From Oikopleura dioica (taxonomy: Eukaryota; Animalia; Chordata), in contig OU015568.1 in the NCBI GenBank assembly GCA_907165135.1, forward strand, positions 1,674,001 to 1,738,000: a stretch of 64,000 nt of DNA, given 5' to 3'. The position numbers and the translations under genes were made by a program. Below, piece by piece: positions 15,848 to 57,700 of the stretch. Position 1 is the stretch's first letter, and each line of letters begins with the position of its first letter. The notes below the pieces were generated by a model. It saw nothing but the letters and a program-made list of their open reading frames with translations. It was not told where the DNA came from and ran no database searches.

Positions 15848-18800
15848 TCAACTCATTCCTGACCACTCAAGCGCGTTGTTCTTCTCTTTCCATCTACATC
15901 TTCGTTTCTCTCCATCGTCGATAACTTCCAGTCCCGGGTCACAGTAGATCTGGCATCTGGCTCCAGCTGCGTTATGATTCTCAGAAGAAAGCCATTCTCG
16001 GCCAATCCTGCATTTCCAAGTCCCATTCGGATATTCGTCCAGGGGTCCGGAATCATTTTCAAAAAGGGGAGGGCAGGTTTCAGTATCGTAGTCAACCGGC
16101 GCTTCCCAATCTGTGATCTCGTTGGCTTCATCAGAATCTTCTGGAACACAGTCAAAATCGTCCTGTGTCCACATGCAAGCCTTCGAAAATGTTATTCTTA
16201 GAAGCTAGAAGTAAAATCTTACATCCTGTCGATTGGAGCATCGGCAACGTCTGGTAATATGTCTATTACCGGGGATATAATTCTTCGGACACTGCAGCTT
16301 ACATCTGAAAATCTACTTAGCGTCTTTATGAACACGATGAGCCGTATTTTAGACTTTCGAAAGTGAATCTTTTTGGTTGCATAATGATCGGATCAGCGGC
16401 ATCAACAAAGCTGATTTGAGTCTCAAGAAGAGTCAAGTAACCACTTTTTCTAACGCCATGTTTTCGGGTCAGTATAATTCGAGGGTTGTTTCGTGATCAA
16501 ACTATACCTTGAGTTAAAATGAAAGCCTTTTGAACAGCTCCAGCTTCCGACCTCAGAACTAAGCTCTTCGCAAATACCTCCAGCGACGGGAGCTTGTGTC
16601 GTTATCTCAATATCTTCTTCAGGGAGGCAGAAAAGCTGCTCGTCATTCCAATCACATTTTCCTTTGCGGCATTTGCACCGCAAAACGGTACGGCGCTGCT
16701 CATATCGATCGTTGCATTGAAGTTTGCACTAGTACTGAGCTCATAAAACGTCGTAATTTTAGGAGGAAGATTTTCCGAATTTAATCAAAAATATTTATCG
16801 AACTCTCCTTTGTATCATGAGAATTCCCATCTGTGCACTCCCAGAAACCATTAGGATCTTCAAGCGCCTCACAAAATTCGTCTGCCGCGGTTGTCGTAGC
16901 TTCAGGATCTTTTGTTGTTGGAACTGGCGTCGTGGTTGGCTCTTCTAAGCAGGTTAAGTCTGGTTCAGTCCATCCGCAACCAGTATCAGAACATTCGCAG
17001 GATGTTTTCATTCTGAAAACCGCGTTGAGTCAAGAACATGAAATTCGAGATCATTCGATAATTACCTAGCGTGAGAGTCAAAGAGCGGTTTTTGGCAGCG
17101 AAGTTTACACTAAGAAGGATTATTGTTAAATTGCACAAATAGTTTGTCGGAAGACACGGTTTTGTGTTCCACTGGTAACCTAATAAATAACACGCAACGG
17201 AACTAAATCAAGTATTGTGTGCTACTAAGAAGCTATTATTGCGATCTTCAAACCTGGACACCTTCAGGGAGAGTGTCAGCCAACTCGTATTCTTCTGGGT
17301 TAAATTCGAAGATTTCACCACCCCAGCCTTCAATTTTACAAATCCATTGGGAGCGTTCATGAGGAGCAGTCAATGGTGGGCAGTTTTTGCTTTCATCAAC
17401 TGTTGTTGCTGTTGAAACCCACGACCATGTGGTTGTTTTTGGTGTTAATTCATCAGAAGTCGAGGTAGTATAAACTAGAGTTGACGAAGTAGGATCATAC
17501 GAAGATGTCGATGTTGTTCCTTGATCACTTGTCGTCGATGAAAATGCAGAAGTGCTGGTATAATCTGTCGATGTCGTGGGTCTTGATGATGTTCTGGAGG
17601 TTGTGGAAGTGGGGTCATATGAAGATGTCGTTGTTGTTCCTGAGTCTCTTGTTGTCGTAGAAAATGCGCTAGTGCTGGTGTAATCTGTTGTTGACGTAGT
17701 TTTTGAAGTTGTTCTGGAAGTTGTCGATTCGGTCACAGATGTGGTGTAACCACTTGTGCCGAAAGGAGTAGTTGTAGTTTTTACAGTAGATGTTGTCGTA
17801 GAAGTTGTTGATGTCGTTGTTGTTGTGTAACTAGTCGTAGTTGTGATTTCTGTCGTGGTTGTTGTGGTCGTAGTTGTAGATGAGGTTAAACTTGTGTAAT
17901 CTGTTGTTGTGGTAATTCCTTTCGATGAAGTCGTTGATGAGGTTGTCGCCGAGCTTGTTGTTGTTGACAAGGTCTTTGGTGAAGTTGAAACTGAGCTAGA
18001 AGTCGTCGTGTAATCCGTTGATGTGACAGAACTTGTTGTTGTTGTTGAGCTAGTCGTTGAGATTGCAGTGGTATAATCTGTTGTTTGCGTGGTAGTATAC
18101 TTTGTAGATGACGTTGCAGTTGCTGTTGTCGAAGAAACTGATGATGTATAATCTGTTGATGTTGTAATATCGGTTGTAGATGTGTTCTCAGTCGACGATG
18201 AGTACCCTGTCGATGTTGTATAATCTGATGTTGTCGTTTTTTGTGTTGAGGTTGATGAAAAATAACTCGATGTACTTATTGGTGAGCTCGTAGATGAAGT
18301 TTGATCAGTTGAAGTTGATGTTGTCGTCCTTGTTGTTGTGAATTTGGGCGTTGAAAATGTTGTTGATGTGGTCCTTTCTGTAGTTGTTGTTCCAAATGTG
18401 GTAGTTGAGCTTCCATAAGATGTTGTTGATGTGTACGCCGAAGTTGTTGTTGGTTTGAACGTTGAGGTTGTCGTGGAATATTCAGTTGTTGAAGTTTCGA
18501 ATAGAGTTGATGTTGTCGGTTCAGTTGTGGAGCTGTATAAAGTCTTTTCTTCAGTCGTAGTTTGATAATCAGTTGTGGAGGTCGATGTCTCGAATAGAGT
18601 AGAAGTTGTTGGCTCACTCGTCGTGCTGAAAGAAGAAGACGTTGTCTTTTCGGCAGTGGTCGACTCATAACCAGTTGTTGAGGTTGAGCTCTCGAATACT
18701 GTTGATGTTGTTGGTAAAGTCGTAGAGCTGTACAATGTCGAAGTTGTCTTTCCTGAAGTCGTTGTCCCAAAACCAGTTGTTGTAGAAGTTGACGTCTGAG

Positions 18801-19925
18801 TCGTCGATATTGCAGAGCTCGTCGATGTTTCAGTAGTCGTTGTAGAATAAGTTGTGGTAGAAACTGTAGTCGAGGTAGACGTTGACGTAACTGATGACGT
18901 TGTTGTGATGTCAGAAGTTGTCGACGAGGTTTCAGTTGTTGTTGTAGACGTTCCTCCTGTAGTCTTGGTAGTAATGTCCTCGGTCGAAGTTGTTGTTGAG
19001 ATTGTTGTAGTTGTAGAAGTATTTGTCGTTGTTGTATACTCTGTTGTTGTCGATTCTGGTTCCGTTGTTGTCGTTGTAGTCATTGTGGTGGTAGTAGTTG
19101 TTGAAGTTGTCGTTGTTGATGTTGTCGATCTTGTGGTTGTTGTAGTTGTAGACTTTGTTGTGGTTGTAGTCGATCTTGTTGTTGTCGTGGTGGCAGTTGT
19201 AGTTGTGGTTGTAGTTGATCTTGCTGTGGTGGTGGTAGTTGTTGTAGAGGTAGCTGTTGTAGTTGTTGTCTTTGTTGTGGTTGTCGTCGATCTTGTGGTG
19301 GTGGTGGAGGTTGTTGTAGTTATTGTAGTTGTAGTCTTTGTTGTGGTTGTAGTCGATCTCGTGGTCGTTGTGGTGGTAGTTGTAGACTTTGTTGTAGTTG
19401 TAGTTGATCTTGTGGTTGTGGTGGTGGTTGTTGTTGTTGTGGATGTAGCTGTCGTCGTAGAAGTAGTTGTTGTTTTAGTAGAAGTGGTTGTTGTTGAAGT
19501 TGTAGTCGTTGTGCTTGGTCGTCCCGGACAAAATGTATCAACACCTGATTGTAGTTCAACATCGAAAAATTTCCATTTGCACCCAGTAAAAAGCAGTAAA
19601 AAGCCATTCGATGAAAAACAATCACATTTTGCTACGCCGTGAGCCTCGCCATAATAACAGCTTGGAGTGCATACTGCTCCTGATTCTAGGTTCTCTGGGC
19701 AAGCCCATTCTCCTAGCTCGATTGTTGCAGCGTCATTAATTTTAGTCCCGTTCAAGGATGAGCATGATTCCTAAAAGATAACATAGTGCTTTTTCGAGTC
19801 AATTTTCTTACGCTTGATCTTGAAGCTAATTTATATGTAGTCTCCGCATTGAAAGTATTTTCTTCGTCCAAGTCAAAAGAAAAACACGTTCCAAGCAGCA
19901 AGAACGTGAAAAATCGACTCTTCAT
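15848..19925 (-). CDS. secreted Thr/Ser-rich mucin-like protein with Sushi/CCP-like Cys modules
   Basis: Signal-like MKSRFFTFLLGTCFS (ATG 19925); one Cys module, ~700 aa of T/S-rich sequence in one exon (ORF 17248-19755), then at least four C..W.C....C...C...C.C..C.W modules; no TM segment. Confidence 0.85.
17390..19510 (-). repeat. low-complexity ACA/ACT/ACC codon repeats encoding the mucin domain
   Basis: Imperfect TTTTTRSTTTTTK repeats (~19050-19510) and duplicated blocks such as EPTTSTLFETST and STTDYTSTSAFS..SSYDPTS. Confidence 0.9.
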
Positions 19926-20244
19926 AAAACTCTCTTTTTCTAGTCGCGTCTCTATTTATAAATTTTTCATAAGAGGATTATCTCTTCTTATTGAGAAAAA
20001 CTCCGCAAGTCCAAAAGCAACTGGAAATACTTTTGCTTGTTGTTTGCGTGATTAAACAGGTTTCAGAGTCGGAGATCACTCAGCCAAAATGCTGCCCTGC
20101 TGCCTGAAATGGATACGTTTTAGCTTGAGCCCCCGGATCGACAAAGTTTTCAATAACCGCCTTCACGGATCCTCGCCCCTTGGCCTGGAGAAAAATGATA
20201 GAAGCAAAAGTATTTTTCACAGTTCGTTTATATTCTCTCAGAAT

Positions 20245-33180: not shown

Positions 33181-33745
33181 GCGCCAAATTTTGATATTCA
33201 GAAATTTGACCTTCTCCGAAATTTTCTCTTTTTCAAATTAAAAAAAAGTACAAGCAACTGGAAATAGTATTTATCTGCTGCTGCGTAAACTAAACAATTA
33301 AAAATCTACTAGCCGATTGTTTGTCCGATTTTTTTTGCGGCGACGCACAATGGCGGCGCTAAAGATCGGAAAAAGTGCTGCACGTTTCGGTAATCGAGAC
33401 GTGAAAATTCACAGAAGGAAAAGCTCAATAAGCCAGGGAAAAGAGCTGTTGAAGGGCAATTGCAAGAAAGGATTAATTCTTTAGGGAGAGGGGGTCCAGA
33501 ATGGAACGCAATATTAGATCAAGATCTCTATGGGCTTTTGAACGAAGATGTAGGCATACAACTCAGTTAATGTTGGTGGAATTCGCCTCGATTCTATGGG
33601 ACCAATATGAATGTAGTAAAAATATCGATGCGCGAAACTAGTTTTAAGGGTATCAATTCCGAGGAATGTTCAAAATTTTGAAATCAAGATGAAGTTTTCT
33701 GATGTTTATTATATTATAAAGTTCTCAACATCAGTATTTCAAGAA

Positions 33746-33932
33746 AATTCACGTAAATGGCTCTATTTTGACGGGATTTTTGACCGATTTTTTCTGAACA
33801 ATTTTTTTCTTATTCCCACCGCCTGATTTTTCGAACCCTTTACTTGCCACCCAACATATACTAATTCTTCTATCGAATCAGGTTTTCCCGCATTTTTCGT
33901 CACGGAAATCCCAATTCTCGTCTACCCCCTCC
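33746..33932. mobile_element. right end of an element related to the 35548-35925 MITE
   Basis: ~190 bp clearly alignable to 35740-35925, ending ATTCTCGTCTACCCCCTCC-TTAA; left end not confidently found. Confidence 0.7.
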
Positions 33933-34610: not shown

Positions 34611-36111
34611 ATGAGCTGGGCGGTCTTAGAGAAAGTCCTTCAGGAATTGTCGAAGAGCATTTCTCTTCCTGGAAAATTATGGGTCATGCGCGAATCGGTT
34701 CAAACATCTGTATTTGAAATAAGAAGACACTCTAGTGCCGCTAGATTATTTATCAAAGAAGCATTTTTGAACCAATCAAAGTATCTCTTTATTTTTCGAA
34801 TTCTCGTAGTTCTGAGCATTGGTGACAAAATCTTCTCTGACGAACAAACGTAAGGTCTCTTTTCTCTCGTCATTCTATATTCTTCTAGTCGATTTCAATG
34901 CGATACAAACACACCAGGCTGTACAAACGTCTGCTTCAACCGATTCAATCCCATCTCCCCGATTCGATTCTGGGCAGTGCAAGTTCTCTTCGTTGCTGCT
35001 CCCTCGATCGTCTTCTCTCTTTGGATAGGACACTCTGTTGCTCAAAAAGACGCTGGGAAATCTAAGAAAGCAAAAAGAAAAGCAAAAATTGCAATTTTAA
35101 GTCGGCTTTCTTGTCAATTACTGATGGAAAGCGCTTTCGTTGTTTTGCAGTTTTATCTTTACCGACTTCGATTTAATGAGCAGTAGGATGATTAATCGTA
35201 TGAAAGATGATAAAAAATCAGCTTTGAGTGCAATCCTGAAAAACGATTTCTCGATTGGTCTGGCGAAAATTGGCGGCCATGCATTGGAACTATCGAATGC
35301 TACCTCTCCCGGCCGCAGGAAAAGAACATTTTTCTTTGGTACATGTATGCGAGCTCTGGAATCTGCGTCCTTCTCACGCTTTTTGAGCTTGGCATATTTT
35401 TGAAATCAGGGCCGAATCAAGCTGCTTACTTGCCAAAACCGACGAAGACAAATCGAAAATCACTGCCGCCGAATAGACGGTTGCAGAATAGACTTCAAGC
35501 TCGCCGGAGGTAATTTTTTATTCCCAGAAAAATATTGAGAATTTTAAGGGGGGGGTCGACGAGAATTTTTTCAGGGGTGATCGTAATTTCGCTTGTACAC
35601 ATAGTCTGGGTATGAAACTTATATTTTTGGAATTGTCAGATCCTCCCGAATCTGTTGAGCCTAAAAACATTTGATAAAAATGAGATTTAGGGGGTGAAAT
35701 TAAGAAAAATGTGAAAAAAATCGCCATTTTTGGTGCATTTTCGCGAAAATGGCCCTACTTTGAGGGGATTTTTGACCGATTTTTTCTGGCGAAAATTTTT
35801 TCTAGTTTTCGCCGCCTGATTTTTTCAACCCTTTTCTATCCACCAATAACATCAGATTTTCCCTATCTAATCCGGTTTTCCCGCATTTTTGGTCACGGAA
35901 ATCCCGATTCTCGTCGACCCCCCCCTTAAGCGATATGGAAATGGAGTCAAATATGGCGAATAAATCAAGCTGTGCTTTGACCTTGACGCCGATCGGAAGG
36001 AAAGATTTTAATTTTTAAGAAAAAAATTATGAAATTACTTGAAAAAATCTTTCCAGCGACCCAGATTCAGTGATCGACATGAATTTGGACGATGATTTTG
36101 TTGAAATGTAA
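34611..36111 (+). CDS. connexin (gap junction protein), multi-exon
   Basis: [92 protein letters not shown]; last intron 36000-36056 is GA-AG. Confidence 0.93.
35548..35925. mobile_element. 378-bp MITE, 19-bp perfect TIR starting G8, TTAA TSD (Kolobok-like ends)
   Basis: TTAA(35544-35547)-GGGGGGGGTCGACGAGAAT ... ATTCTCGTCGACCCCCCCC-TTAA(35926-35929). Confidence 0.92.
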
Positions 36112-36761
36112 ATAAAATTCTACTTTCCTCCACCTGTGTTAATTCTCAAGTAAAACGAAAGAGCAGCTATCGAAATTTTATGACGCTCGGGATTAAACTT
36201 TCTGATCATTACTGCTCATTAGCGGAAGCTTCTCGCTTCACGCCTGTCATCTCGAGTCCGTTCTGATGACATCAACTCGTGACAATGCTAACGTTTTATT
36301 CGGCGAAGGAGGGAACTCGTTTTGCGGTTTTTATATTGAGATCAGATGGTTTTTATATTGAAAAACAAATCGGAAATTTTCTACGATTTCAGCGCGAGAT
36401 GAGATTTGAGAATGAAAATTCGAAATTTTTTTTAAAAATAGTAGAAGTGAAACAGTCGAATTCTAGCTTTAAAATGTGGCTGAACTTTATTTCATGCCAT
36501 GATGAATATTTTTATAAATTTAGTTTTTCATTCAGCCAAGATCAATAATGAAAATGATCAAGCTTTTTTTTAGCTTATCAATGGCGTTTCTGAAAGTGAC
36601 TCATAATATAATTCAGTGAATGAAATAGTTTAACGTTGCAGAAACGAAAGCTCCACAAACTGTCCGCAAAATATCGTTAAAGTCAGTCTGGCGCAAACTC
36701 GTGCTCCTATATAATCCTCGCTTCCAACATAGAAGTAGCAAAGTTTTTCATTTGATACAAA

Positions 36762-54726: not shown

Positions 54727-57700
54727 ATGTCATTCCCAATGGATCTGTTTGATGGCAGAGATTATATGGCCTCCAACAACGAGGACAACGAAATCGACCT
54801 CGAAACCATCAACTCCGAGATACCGCCTGCGCAATTCAACCCACAGGAAGAGGCAGCTAGATTTACAGTTCCTAAAATACTTATCAGTCAAAACACCAAC
54901 ACCGTTTAATTTGAGGAAAAGACCTCTTGATAATTAACCTAAAATGAACTTTGAAGATATTGTAAAAACCCTGAGCCTTGATGAGATTATGCCGGAGCTA
55001 GGGGATCAGCTCTCTGTATCGGAAAATACAAGCATTCGATCAAATGAGCTCGACAGTATTCTCGGCACTCACCCGACTGTTTCTGAACCCGTTTCTTCGT
55101 CCTTCGAAATGATCACTTCCTCCGCTGCACCGATTCAATCTGAAGTTCCGAAACCGATTCCATCCGCAATGCCGATTACTCGACCAAAAAAGCTTATTTA
55201 TGAATACGAAGAACCTTGCCCGATTTGTGGCGATAAGATTACGGGATATCACTATGGAATTCTCACATGCGAAAGCTGCAAAGGATTTTTCAAGAGAACC
55301 GTGCAGAATAAGAAGACTTATCAATGTGTGGATATGGGAGATTGTGTGATCAACAAGATTCAGAGAAAGAGATGTCCTGCATGTCGATACCAGGTTCGTA
55401 GAATTTTTATGACAAACCATAAGTTTATTGAGTTTTTAGTCGTTTATAATTTTTTATACCGCAATTTTTTTGGGGTTTACAAGTTTAACCACGTATGATT
55501 TAAGTAGCAAGTACCATCACTTTTTCTCTAGAAATGTATGCGAATGGGAATGAAACTAGAAGCCATCCGAGCAGACCGTCTTCGCGGCGGCCGAAACAAA
55601 TTTGGGCCTCTTTACAAACATGATCGAGCCCTGAAAATGCAGAACAAAACCATCAGTCTTCAGGCTCCATCATCATCTCTTTTAGCTGCTACGAGTCAAA
55701 ATGACTCTCCATCAACGTCAAAGGTATTTGAAAAATTTTTCATAGAAGCGAACCTTGAATTCAAGGGTATTTTCGACGAGCATTTGAGCATACAAGGGAC
55801 GACTGAAAATACTGGTTTTGCTCAGCCACCTCAGAGTCAACAAGGAGCGATTCAAGGCCATCCTATGAACCATGGGAAGGCTTCGTCTAATCCACCTTCG
55901 GTCACATCTGAAAGTGTTCCAAGAAGAGTGACAGTTACTGAATGCGATAACTGCTCGCAGACGTCAAGTTCTTGTGGCAAAATTCGCCGCGAAAGTGGCC
56001 CCTCTAATTCTCATTTCAACCCCTACAGAGTTCCTCCTCATTTCTCTCTTGAACGGGACTACGAGTCACACATGCGCCAACAAGAACGAGCGCTTGATCG
56101 GCTGTTTTCTGAGCGCGATTCTAGAGGAGGCCCTGGTCCGCGGTATCCTTACGATCTTCCAGGATATCCTCCTTTTCCGCCACATCCCTCTGACAGCGAA
56201 AGGTTTTCTTGGTACAGTGCGTATGCTGACTCGAGATACTTGCATGGCTCGATGCATGGGCTGAGATCAGGATTGCCGATTCCACCAAGAAGTTTCATGA
56301 GGTGAGAAACCATAAATAGAATATTTATGGGAATAACCAGGCTTTTTTCTTATCGTGAGATCGAAGAAAATTGAAAACAAGATAAAACAAAGGAAGATTT
56401 GTAAATATTATTGATACTAATTAAAAGGGAAAATCACTCATAATTAACCTTAGCCCGCCAAAAGTGGATTTTCTGGGGTACCCGCCAAGAACACCATATA
56501 TGGACCATATAATATGGACCATATTATATGGTCCATATAATATGGTGCATCTTCCATTGTATCGCTTCACCATATTCAATTTCTCAATATTTTACTAAAT
56601 ATCTTCGTTGGAAAATATTTTTTACGACATATAGAAGTGTTCTAATGACGATACTGAAGTTCATTCAATCAAAAATTATTGTTTATAAATTCATAGATCG
56701 AGGATAAGAGAAGAAGACCAGGGTAAACATTTAGCAAAATCGCTGGGAATAAGCTGGGGTACCCGCCACAAACACCATATATGGTGTAGCAACAATTGTA
56801 GCTCGACACCATATATGGTGCATGGACTTTTTGGAAAATTAAGGGTCTACAGACGCAAACGTCTATCAGAAACAGGCCTAAAAGCCCTTGGTCGATAGAT
56901 AATCGATCATGCCGTCTCAGCGTTTCCTCCGTTTCCGAAAAAAATTTTAGTGTCGAGCGCAGTGAGCGAATATGTGACCGATTCAAGAGTCGTGGTGTAC
57001 CTTGGCGGGCTAAGGTTAAGCTTTTTTGGGCGTTCAAAAATTCAAATTTCCGAAGTTGGCCGGATTTTCCGACTTCGGAGGTGCCTTAATGCCCTCAGGG
57101 TACGAGTTGACCCCCCACTATCAATAGTCAATCTGATCCTTAGCTTCTGCGGATTCTAAATCTGTATTATATCCTGACCCTTCTAAGCCAGAAAAAAAGC
57201 TAAATTATTAGTGATTTCCCATACTTATTATGATAATTATATAAAATGCGGAATTCCGAAGATTCTAAATGTTCAGTAGACAATTCGAAGAAAATCGAGA
57301 ATTCTTCCGCCATGGAGAGTCCCCTTATTCCCGTTCCCGAGATCATCAATATCCACCACAGTCAACTTCCCAAAGAAGCAATGATCATCGCTTTCCTCAA
57401 ACACCCCATGGCTCAACCTGGCCATATCCTCCACGAGTCGGTCCCGGAGCAAGTGTAGGAAATCACGGGCACAGGCCTTCTTCACTTGAGCCAGGAGAAA
57501 GCGATATTTTCACGCTCTCGAATCAGGAGCTTTTGAAAAAGATGATCACTCACTGGATACCAGAAGAATCGCTAAGAAAAGATGCTCAACATGCAGTCAA
57601 AGATGTCGATACAGTGGATTTGGTGAATCTCATTGTGAAGATGGTCGAACAGGTAAGTGATCTTGGCATTTTTTTTTTGCTAATAATTTTCAGATTTTGT

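Follow-up and report, generated by a model that had tools for sequence, protein, structure and literature searches.

Introns that arise from transposons have been described as introners (Huff 2016, Gozashti 2022; summarised in PMC11282704 and cited in PMC13326754), and Fritillaria borealis carries non-canonical introns that are derived from MITEs and retain inverted ends and target-site duplications (Henriet 2019, as reported in PMC11282704 and PMC13326754). As presented in these summaries, the element in both cases makes up the whole of an intron in a once-continuous coding sequence, its splicing has been shown by RNA, the splice sites can come either from the element or from the duplication, and the paired ends may join the ends of the intron. 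For Oikopleura, PMC3443670 names transposon insertion among the sources of new introns, citing Denoeud 2010 on this point. Non-GT-AG introns are documented in Oikopleura dioica, where they account for 11% of introns in the OKI2018_I69 assembly (PMC8008620). A different kind of nested arrangement is represented by stwintrons, in which an inner intron interrupts a splice signal of the outer intron and two consecutive splices are obligatory (PMC8469720, PMC6616335). Among transposons with TTAA target sites, Kolobok elements generate a TTAA duplication and have termini of the form 5′-RR and YY-3′, unlike piggyBac (PMC9587614).

The locus described here lies in a connexin gene of O. dioica, within a window (the whole stretch of DNA that was analysed) of 64,000 nucleotides. 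It is probably best understood as a recent, polymorphic Kolobok-type MITE that inserted into an intron of this gene and leaves the transcript within an enlarged GT-AG intron of 421 nt. Like introners and the introns of F. borealis, it combines a small DNA transposon, inverted ends, a target-site duplication and an intron position, and scarless removal is possible. Unlike introners, it sits within an older intron and created no new one, and so is not an introner. The resemblance to stwintrons and to ratchet points, which are sites of recursive splicing, consists in a 3′ splice site that stands directly before a potential 5′ splice site (35548/35549). It differs from stwintrons in that a complete acceptor is present at both junctions, so that one splice is enough, and in that the putative inner donor is GG and not GT; the outer signal is not disrupted. 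The proposal of Denoeud 2010, as rendered in PMC3443670, of an Oikopleura transposon precisely removed together with its duplication is also similar. The literature searched did not pair GG-AG introns with Oikopleura, nor G-tipped TTAA elements with GG-AG introns.

The window belongs to the PAR (pseudo-autosomal) scaffold of OKI2018_I69, and public gene models were taken from OU015568.1:1704843-1717422, where the sequence is identical to that of the window. The host gene corresponds to g8894 (Oidioi.mRNA.OKI2018_I69.PAR.g8894), which is annotated at 35124-36111 (+) and encodes a protein of 156 amino acids with a connexin Pfam match; the ORF downstream is 100% identical to Oidioi.mRNA.OKI2018_I69.PAR.g8895. 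The g8894 protein is exactly reproduced by four exons (35124-35182, 35222-35509, 35931-35999 and 36057-36111) that total 471 nt, giving 156 amino acids and a stop codon. The introns of this model are one of 39 nt (GT-AG), the 421-nt GT-AG intron (35510-35930) that holds the element, and one of 57 nt (GA-AG; 36000-36056). At the second of these the protein junction QARR/S/DMEMES demands the removal of exactly 35510-35930. A different exon model, with an ATG at 35176 and a 71-nt intron at 35339-35409, is ruled out by the annotated frame of the g8894 protein.

The public model is truncated and seems to cover only the C-terminal half of a full-length connexin. Matches to Pfam PF00029 are colinear along the gene (profile positions 27-47, 49-112 with E 2.4e-23, and 182-222 with E 4.5e-14), and their scores of 83.5 and 53.2 bits compare with a gathering cut-off of 31.3, which identifies a connexin. 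Exons at 34611-34682, 34782-34849 and 34889-35182 code for the N-terminus, membrane helices 1 and 2 and the first loop, and the upstream part (34611-35123) belongs to no called gene. Both extracellular-loop cysteine motifs are present: C-x6-C-x3-C is read in the exon at 34889-35182, and the second loop has three cysteines ahead of an SRPQEK motif. The exon upstream of the insertion encodes this second loop, the fourth membrane helix and the beginning of the tail, and the element lies in the portion of the gene for that cytoplasmic tail. Three introns of the gene are exactly 39 nt long (34850-34888, 35183-35221 and 35510-35548). A gap in the Pfam profile match suggests that 34683-34781 is also an intron; this candidate (99 nt, GT..AAG) keeps the frame and has no stop codon, so it could be read through.

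Comparable connexin sequences were sought elsewhere. No connexin was found on the Bergen scaffold that carries a homologue of the neighbouring gene, and hence no orthologous intron. A Tara Oceans metagenome contig of 1132 nt encodes a 144-amino-acid connexin fragment, presumably from another larvacean lineage, that is 63% identical over the loop and fourth-helix region and stops before the tail.

Coordinates of the features of the connexin locus, the inserted element and its decayed relative (positions in the window)
Feature	Position	Strand	Basis or remark
Proposed full-length connexin gene	34611..36111	+	Colinear Pfam PF00029 matches and g8894 model
Proposed connexin exons	34611-34682, 34782-34849, 34889-35182, 35222-35509, 35931-35999, 36057-36111	+	
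Exon upstream of the insertion	35222..35509	+	g8894 protein 100% identical; ends ..CGGAG before GT 35510
Present intron, GT..AG, 421 nt	35510..35930	+	39-nt original plus 382 nt (element and one TTAA)
Original 39-nt intron, GT..AAG, intact	35510..35548	+	Own acceptor TTTTAAG, proximal AG at 35547-35548
Left TTAA target-site duplication	35544..35547	.	Repeat search
Non-autonomous transposon (MITE), 378 bp, ends 5′-GG..CC-3′	35548..35925	.	Repeat search
Left terminal inverted repeat, 19 nt	35548..35566	+	Repeat search; G8 followed by TCGACGAGAAT
Acceptor-like T6-CAG in the element, possible cryptic 3′ splice site	35566..35574	+	Sequence only
Right terminal inverted repeat, 19 nt	35907..35925	+	Repeat search; perfect complement of the left repeat, ending in C8
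Right TTAA duplication	35926..35929	.	Repeat search; with G 35930 forms the distal acceptor TTAAG
Exon downstream of the insertion, connexin C-terminal tail	35931..35999	+	g8894 protein
Neighbouring GA-AG intron, 57 nt	36000..36056	+	g8894 junction TPIG/S/DPDS
Older decayed relative of the element	33484..33932	.	Right 188 nt 81% identical to the element

The original prediction, made from the DNA sequence, placed a TTAA-specific element with G-run ends in the acceptor TTTTAAG of a 39-nt intron, and a repeat search confirmed this. The 39-nt intron holds a single TTAA, which lies inside the acceptor, and because there is only one, a TTAA-specific element that entered this intron had to hit the acceptor. 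As had also been claimed, TTAAG stands at both junctions and a run of eight C residues precedes the distal acceptor. An unbroken TTTTAAG remains at 35542-35548 and a new TTAAG is found at 35926-35930: the target duplication copied the acceptor and did not destroy it. The g8894 model uses the distal TTAAG, half of which is duplication. Since the acceptor was duplicated and not interrupted, no second splice is needed.

The element has the properties of a MITE: it is short, has inverted ends and a target duplication, lacks coding capacity, occurs in many copies and is mobile. Its arms together with the TTAA span 23 nt and are 100% complementary. An 18-nt motif from its ends occurs three times in the window, compared with 0.03 occurrences expected by chance. 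The only ORFs in the element are of 69 and 72 amino acids, neither of which has a Pfam match at E values up to 1, and an Rfam search of the element gave no match. In the DNA sequencing run of a second individual (X3), 682 contig pieces aligned to a stretch of 1201 nt; for 178 of these pieces identity was at least 99%. In summed depth the element exceeds its flanks by a factor of tens to hundreds, a summed contig depth not being a copy number. These figures point to a multi-copy family, many of whose members are nearly identical and hence young. Two metagenome scans returned no matches to the element, whether the query was a subterminal motif or the end together with TTAA. The decayed relative in the window, to which the third occurrence of the end motif belongs, matches the element at 17 of 19 positions of its right end, which is followed by TTAAG. 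At the left it is flanked by TTTA and its end is degenerate, with 12 of 19 positions in agreement in an ungapped comparison; the left half shows no relation to the young copy. This relative sits between a glycosyltransferase gene and the start of the connexin gene, possibly in promoter territory.

The prediction had further raised, as a question, a Kolobok-type autonomous partner. Both end features of Kolobok are found, namely the TTAA duplication and GG..CC termini, and the element shares with Kolobok MITEs (PMC9587614) its short length, inverted ends, lack of an ORF and many copies in addition to the TTAA duplication and RR..YY termini. piggyBac MITEs have the TTAA duplication in common with this element, and their end polarity is opposite, in line with the contrast drawn by the same source. 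The putative assignment to the Kolobok superfamily is one by end signatures. Kolobok elements are mobilised by a DDD/E transposase with the C/DxxH signature, and no transposase was found in the window. The ends of piggyBac elements are 5′-CC..GG-3′, and this polarity next to TTAA is not that of the present element. The run of eight G residues at the tip is, to our knowledge, not a described Kolobok feature. The window also holds a 568-bp piggyBac-type MITE (56444-57019), which is flanked by TTAA, has perfect 14-nt ends starting CCTTAGCCCGCC and CC..GG polarity, contains internal palindromic repeats at 56497-56560, and has a G after its right TTAA.

The X3 individual differs from the reference by about 4% at the locus and carries the insertion on one of two alleles. 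A contig of the filled allele covers 35899-36006 and bridges the right junction without mismatches at a depth of 9.4; 77 nt of it are unique flank and 31 nt belong to the element and duplication. A second contig, of depth 12.1, joins about 30 nt ending at 35544 to 35926-36006 and represents the empty site; the two depths add up to the local depth of 21.5. The presence of filled and empty contigs in one DNA run means that the insertion is recent and still polymorphic, and that the empty site exists as DNA. The empty allele retains the 39-nt intron. A synonymous site at 35976, 46 nt downstream of the insert, separates the X3 alleles, with T on the filled and C on the empty one. The empty-site joint skips 381 and not 382 nt, the empty haplotype apparently having five T residues where the reference flank has four. 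This is taken to be a homopolymer of unequal length in haplotypes that are 3-4% divergent (heterozygosity is estimated at 3.6% in the assembly paper, PMC8008620), and may also be a homopolymer or polishing error or an excision footprint. That the Nanopore assembly misplaced the element has next to no probability, for the risk is only the general one that attends a family of many near-identical copies, and it is refuted by the independent short-read X3 contig across the right junction and by the perfect TTAA duplication.

Both X3 alleles have the same contig downstream of the insertion, and it shows 13 differences from the reference; the insertion is therefore present on at least two backgrounds. 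Within the annotated coding sequence, six of the eight X3 differences are synonymous third positions and the other two are conservative replacements. The difference at 35318, in the exon at 35222-35509, is synonymous, as are four of the five in the last exon, all four being third positions. Because the coding differences are mostly synonymous, including those in both exons past the insertion, the reading frame across the 35509/35931 junction and across the GA-AG intron is under purifying selection. The ends of the GA-AG intron (35999-36009 and 36044-36054) are perfectly complementary over 11 nt, and AG at both of its boundaries makes the register of its junction ambiguous. In X3, changes occur at 36051 and 36054 in the right arm of this repeat and compensating changes are absent, so the pairing of the intron ends does not look constrained.

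Deletion of 35549-35930 (GG..AG, 382 nt) restores the 39-nt intron, exactly as had been predicted, and from this a seamless GG-AG sub-intron had been proposed. The register exists; as a distinct intron the sub-intron is not supported, and it is one of six equivalent deletions that restore the empty site (TT..CC, TA..CT, AA..TT, AG..TA, GG..AA and GG..AG). Any 4-bp duplication gives five such registers, and a sixth is gained where the target is followed by the same base with which the element begins. The GG..AG register is present here because the host site is TTAAG and the element begins with G; in the window TTAA is followed by G at 34 of 296 TTAA sites (11%). The sequence thus presents the GG-AG sub-intron as a by-product of the duplication register, an architecture that is real but expected. 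Nor is such a sub-intron required, as a single 421-nt GT-AG intron explains the g8894 model, which was hinted by RNA-seq.

The annotation was made with AUGUSTUS using RNA-seq and transcript hints, and the RNA came from a culture and not from the sequenced male (PMC8008620). The public model joins 35509 to 35931. This junction is compatible with a single 421-nt splice and with any two-step route, and its source may also be empty alleles that were transcribed in the laboratory culture. In a later re-annotation of OKI2018_I69, GAAG, GCAG and GGAG sites were allowed only when hinted (bioRxiv 10.1101/2023.05.09.539028), and it is assumed that the deposited model was built under the same rule. Three RNA runs of 2026, two of them bulk oligo-dT and one single-cell, all labelled O. 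dioica, gave no reads over 35100-36300; they probably come from another cryptic lineage, or the gene is silent.

The most likely route of removal, modelled on the predicted structure, would be a single splice from GT 35510 to AG 35930. In this model the element lands in the sole TTAA of the 39-nt intron and the acceptor is copied, leaving one copy at 35548 and one at 35930. The 23-bp hairpin formed by the element ends and TTAA would then loop out 340 nt and aid the single splice, burying the proximal AG and the G-run and placing the old branch region beside the distal AG. In a fold of the RNA of 35500-35945 (-136 kcal/mol, z -3.6), the element ends and TTAA pair with each other, in the centroid structure as well as in that of minimum energy. 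The predicted stem pairs the proximal AG (35547-35548), the G-run and the C8 run, and the distal AG lies where the stem closes, within a few nucleotides of the old branch region. The C8 run does precede the distal acceptor, but that it serves there as a pyrimidine tract is not supported; it is predicted to be paired with the G8 of the other end in the pre-mRNA.

The proximal acceptor could nevertheless win, as it is intact, the original branch site is intact too, and it offers the first AG after the branch region. It is accordingly conceivable, if unlikely, that the filled allele is mis-spliced at 35548 or at the T6-CAG ending at 35574, with a frameshift that yields a connexin without its last 40 residues or leads to degradation of the mRNA, the annotated junction then coming from empty alleles. 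The unchanged proximal acceptor and branch region, which come first, speak for this, and a stop is reached after 22 codons from 35549 or after 32 codons from 35575; the T6-CAG ends 26 nt beyond the proximal AG, and its use gives an in-frame stop. The polymorphism of the insertion, which has thus not been fixed by selection, and the origin of the annotation RNA in culture (PMC8008620) are likewise in keeping with mis-splicing. Weighing against it is the presence of the insertion both in the reference individual and in X3, where the 13 downstream differences suggest segregation and recombination and not purging. The hairpin should, moreover, mask the proximal AG, and only a poorly conserved tail would be affected.

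Removal in two steps is a still less probable course. Here either GG(35549)..AG(35930) would be excised first and the 39-nt intron second, or, in the reverse order, the 39-nt intron would be spliced to AG 35548 and the regenerated GAG/GGGGGGGU would act as a GG donor to AG 35930; the intact proximal acceptor makes such a first step to 35548 plausible. The register for it exists and leaves no scar, about 11% of introns in O. dioica are non-GT-AG (PMC8008620), and hinted GG-AG introns were permitted in the re-annotation (bioRxiv 10.1101/2023.05.09.539028). The putative donor AAG/GGGGG agrees with the donor of the GA-AG intron, AAG/GAAAG at 36000, from position -3 to +1 and again in the G at +5, but mismatches the usual consensus at +2, +4 and +6. 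The outer GT..AG pair is intact, which makes a second splice unnecessary, and folding predicts that a GC-rich stem of 23 bp ties up both the GG donor and the C8 run. The annotation holds no trace of two steps, though the final mRNA would be identical, and the proposed intermediate, in which 35548 is joined to 35931 and the 39-nt intron is still present, has the same sequence as empty-allele RNA before splicing.

A wider form of the same idea is that a permissive O. dioica spliceosome recognises the ends of G-tipped TTAA MITEs, from AAG/GG.. to ..C-run-TTAAG, and this too is improbable. If it were true, the MITE at 35548-35925 would be a nested intron taken out in a second step, and fresh insertions at exonic TTAAG sites would be spliced scarlessly and would add to the pool of GG-AG introns. 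The original prediction went as far as a transposon route to new GG-AG introns, and this the locus does not sustain, since a copy in a pre-existing intron cannot show such a route.

Taken as a single enlarged GT-AG intron, the case is one of ordinary intronic insertion, another MITE copy in a compact genome, and the analysis corrects a truncated connexin gene model. The two alleles also make up a natural experiment in which one intron occurs in two forms, either empty or carrying 382 nt by which its acceptor is duplicated, and the exonic site 35976 (T or C) is a linked marker. The pair bears on acceptor choice, on the hiding of an insert by a hairpin and on the use of GG donors at transposon tips. 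A bearing on the origin of new or non-canonical introns in Oikopleura would arise only if RNA proved positive or if the family were found to match GG-AG introns genome-wide.

Elsewhere in the window, positions 18001-20000 show a GC skew of +0.35 and an AT skew of -0.29 over an ORF of 835 amino acids (17248-19755, minus strand), which suggests that the product of this ORF is compositionally biased or repetitive.
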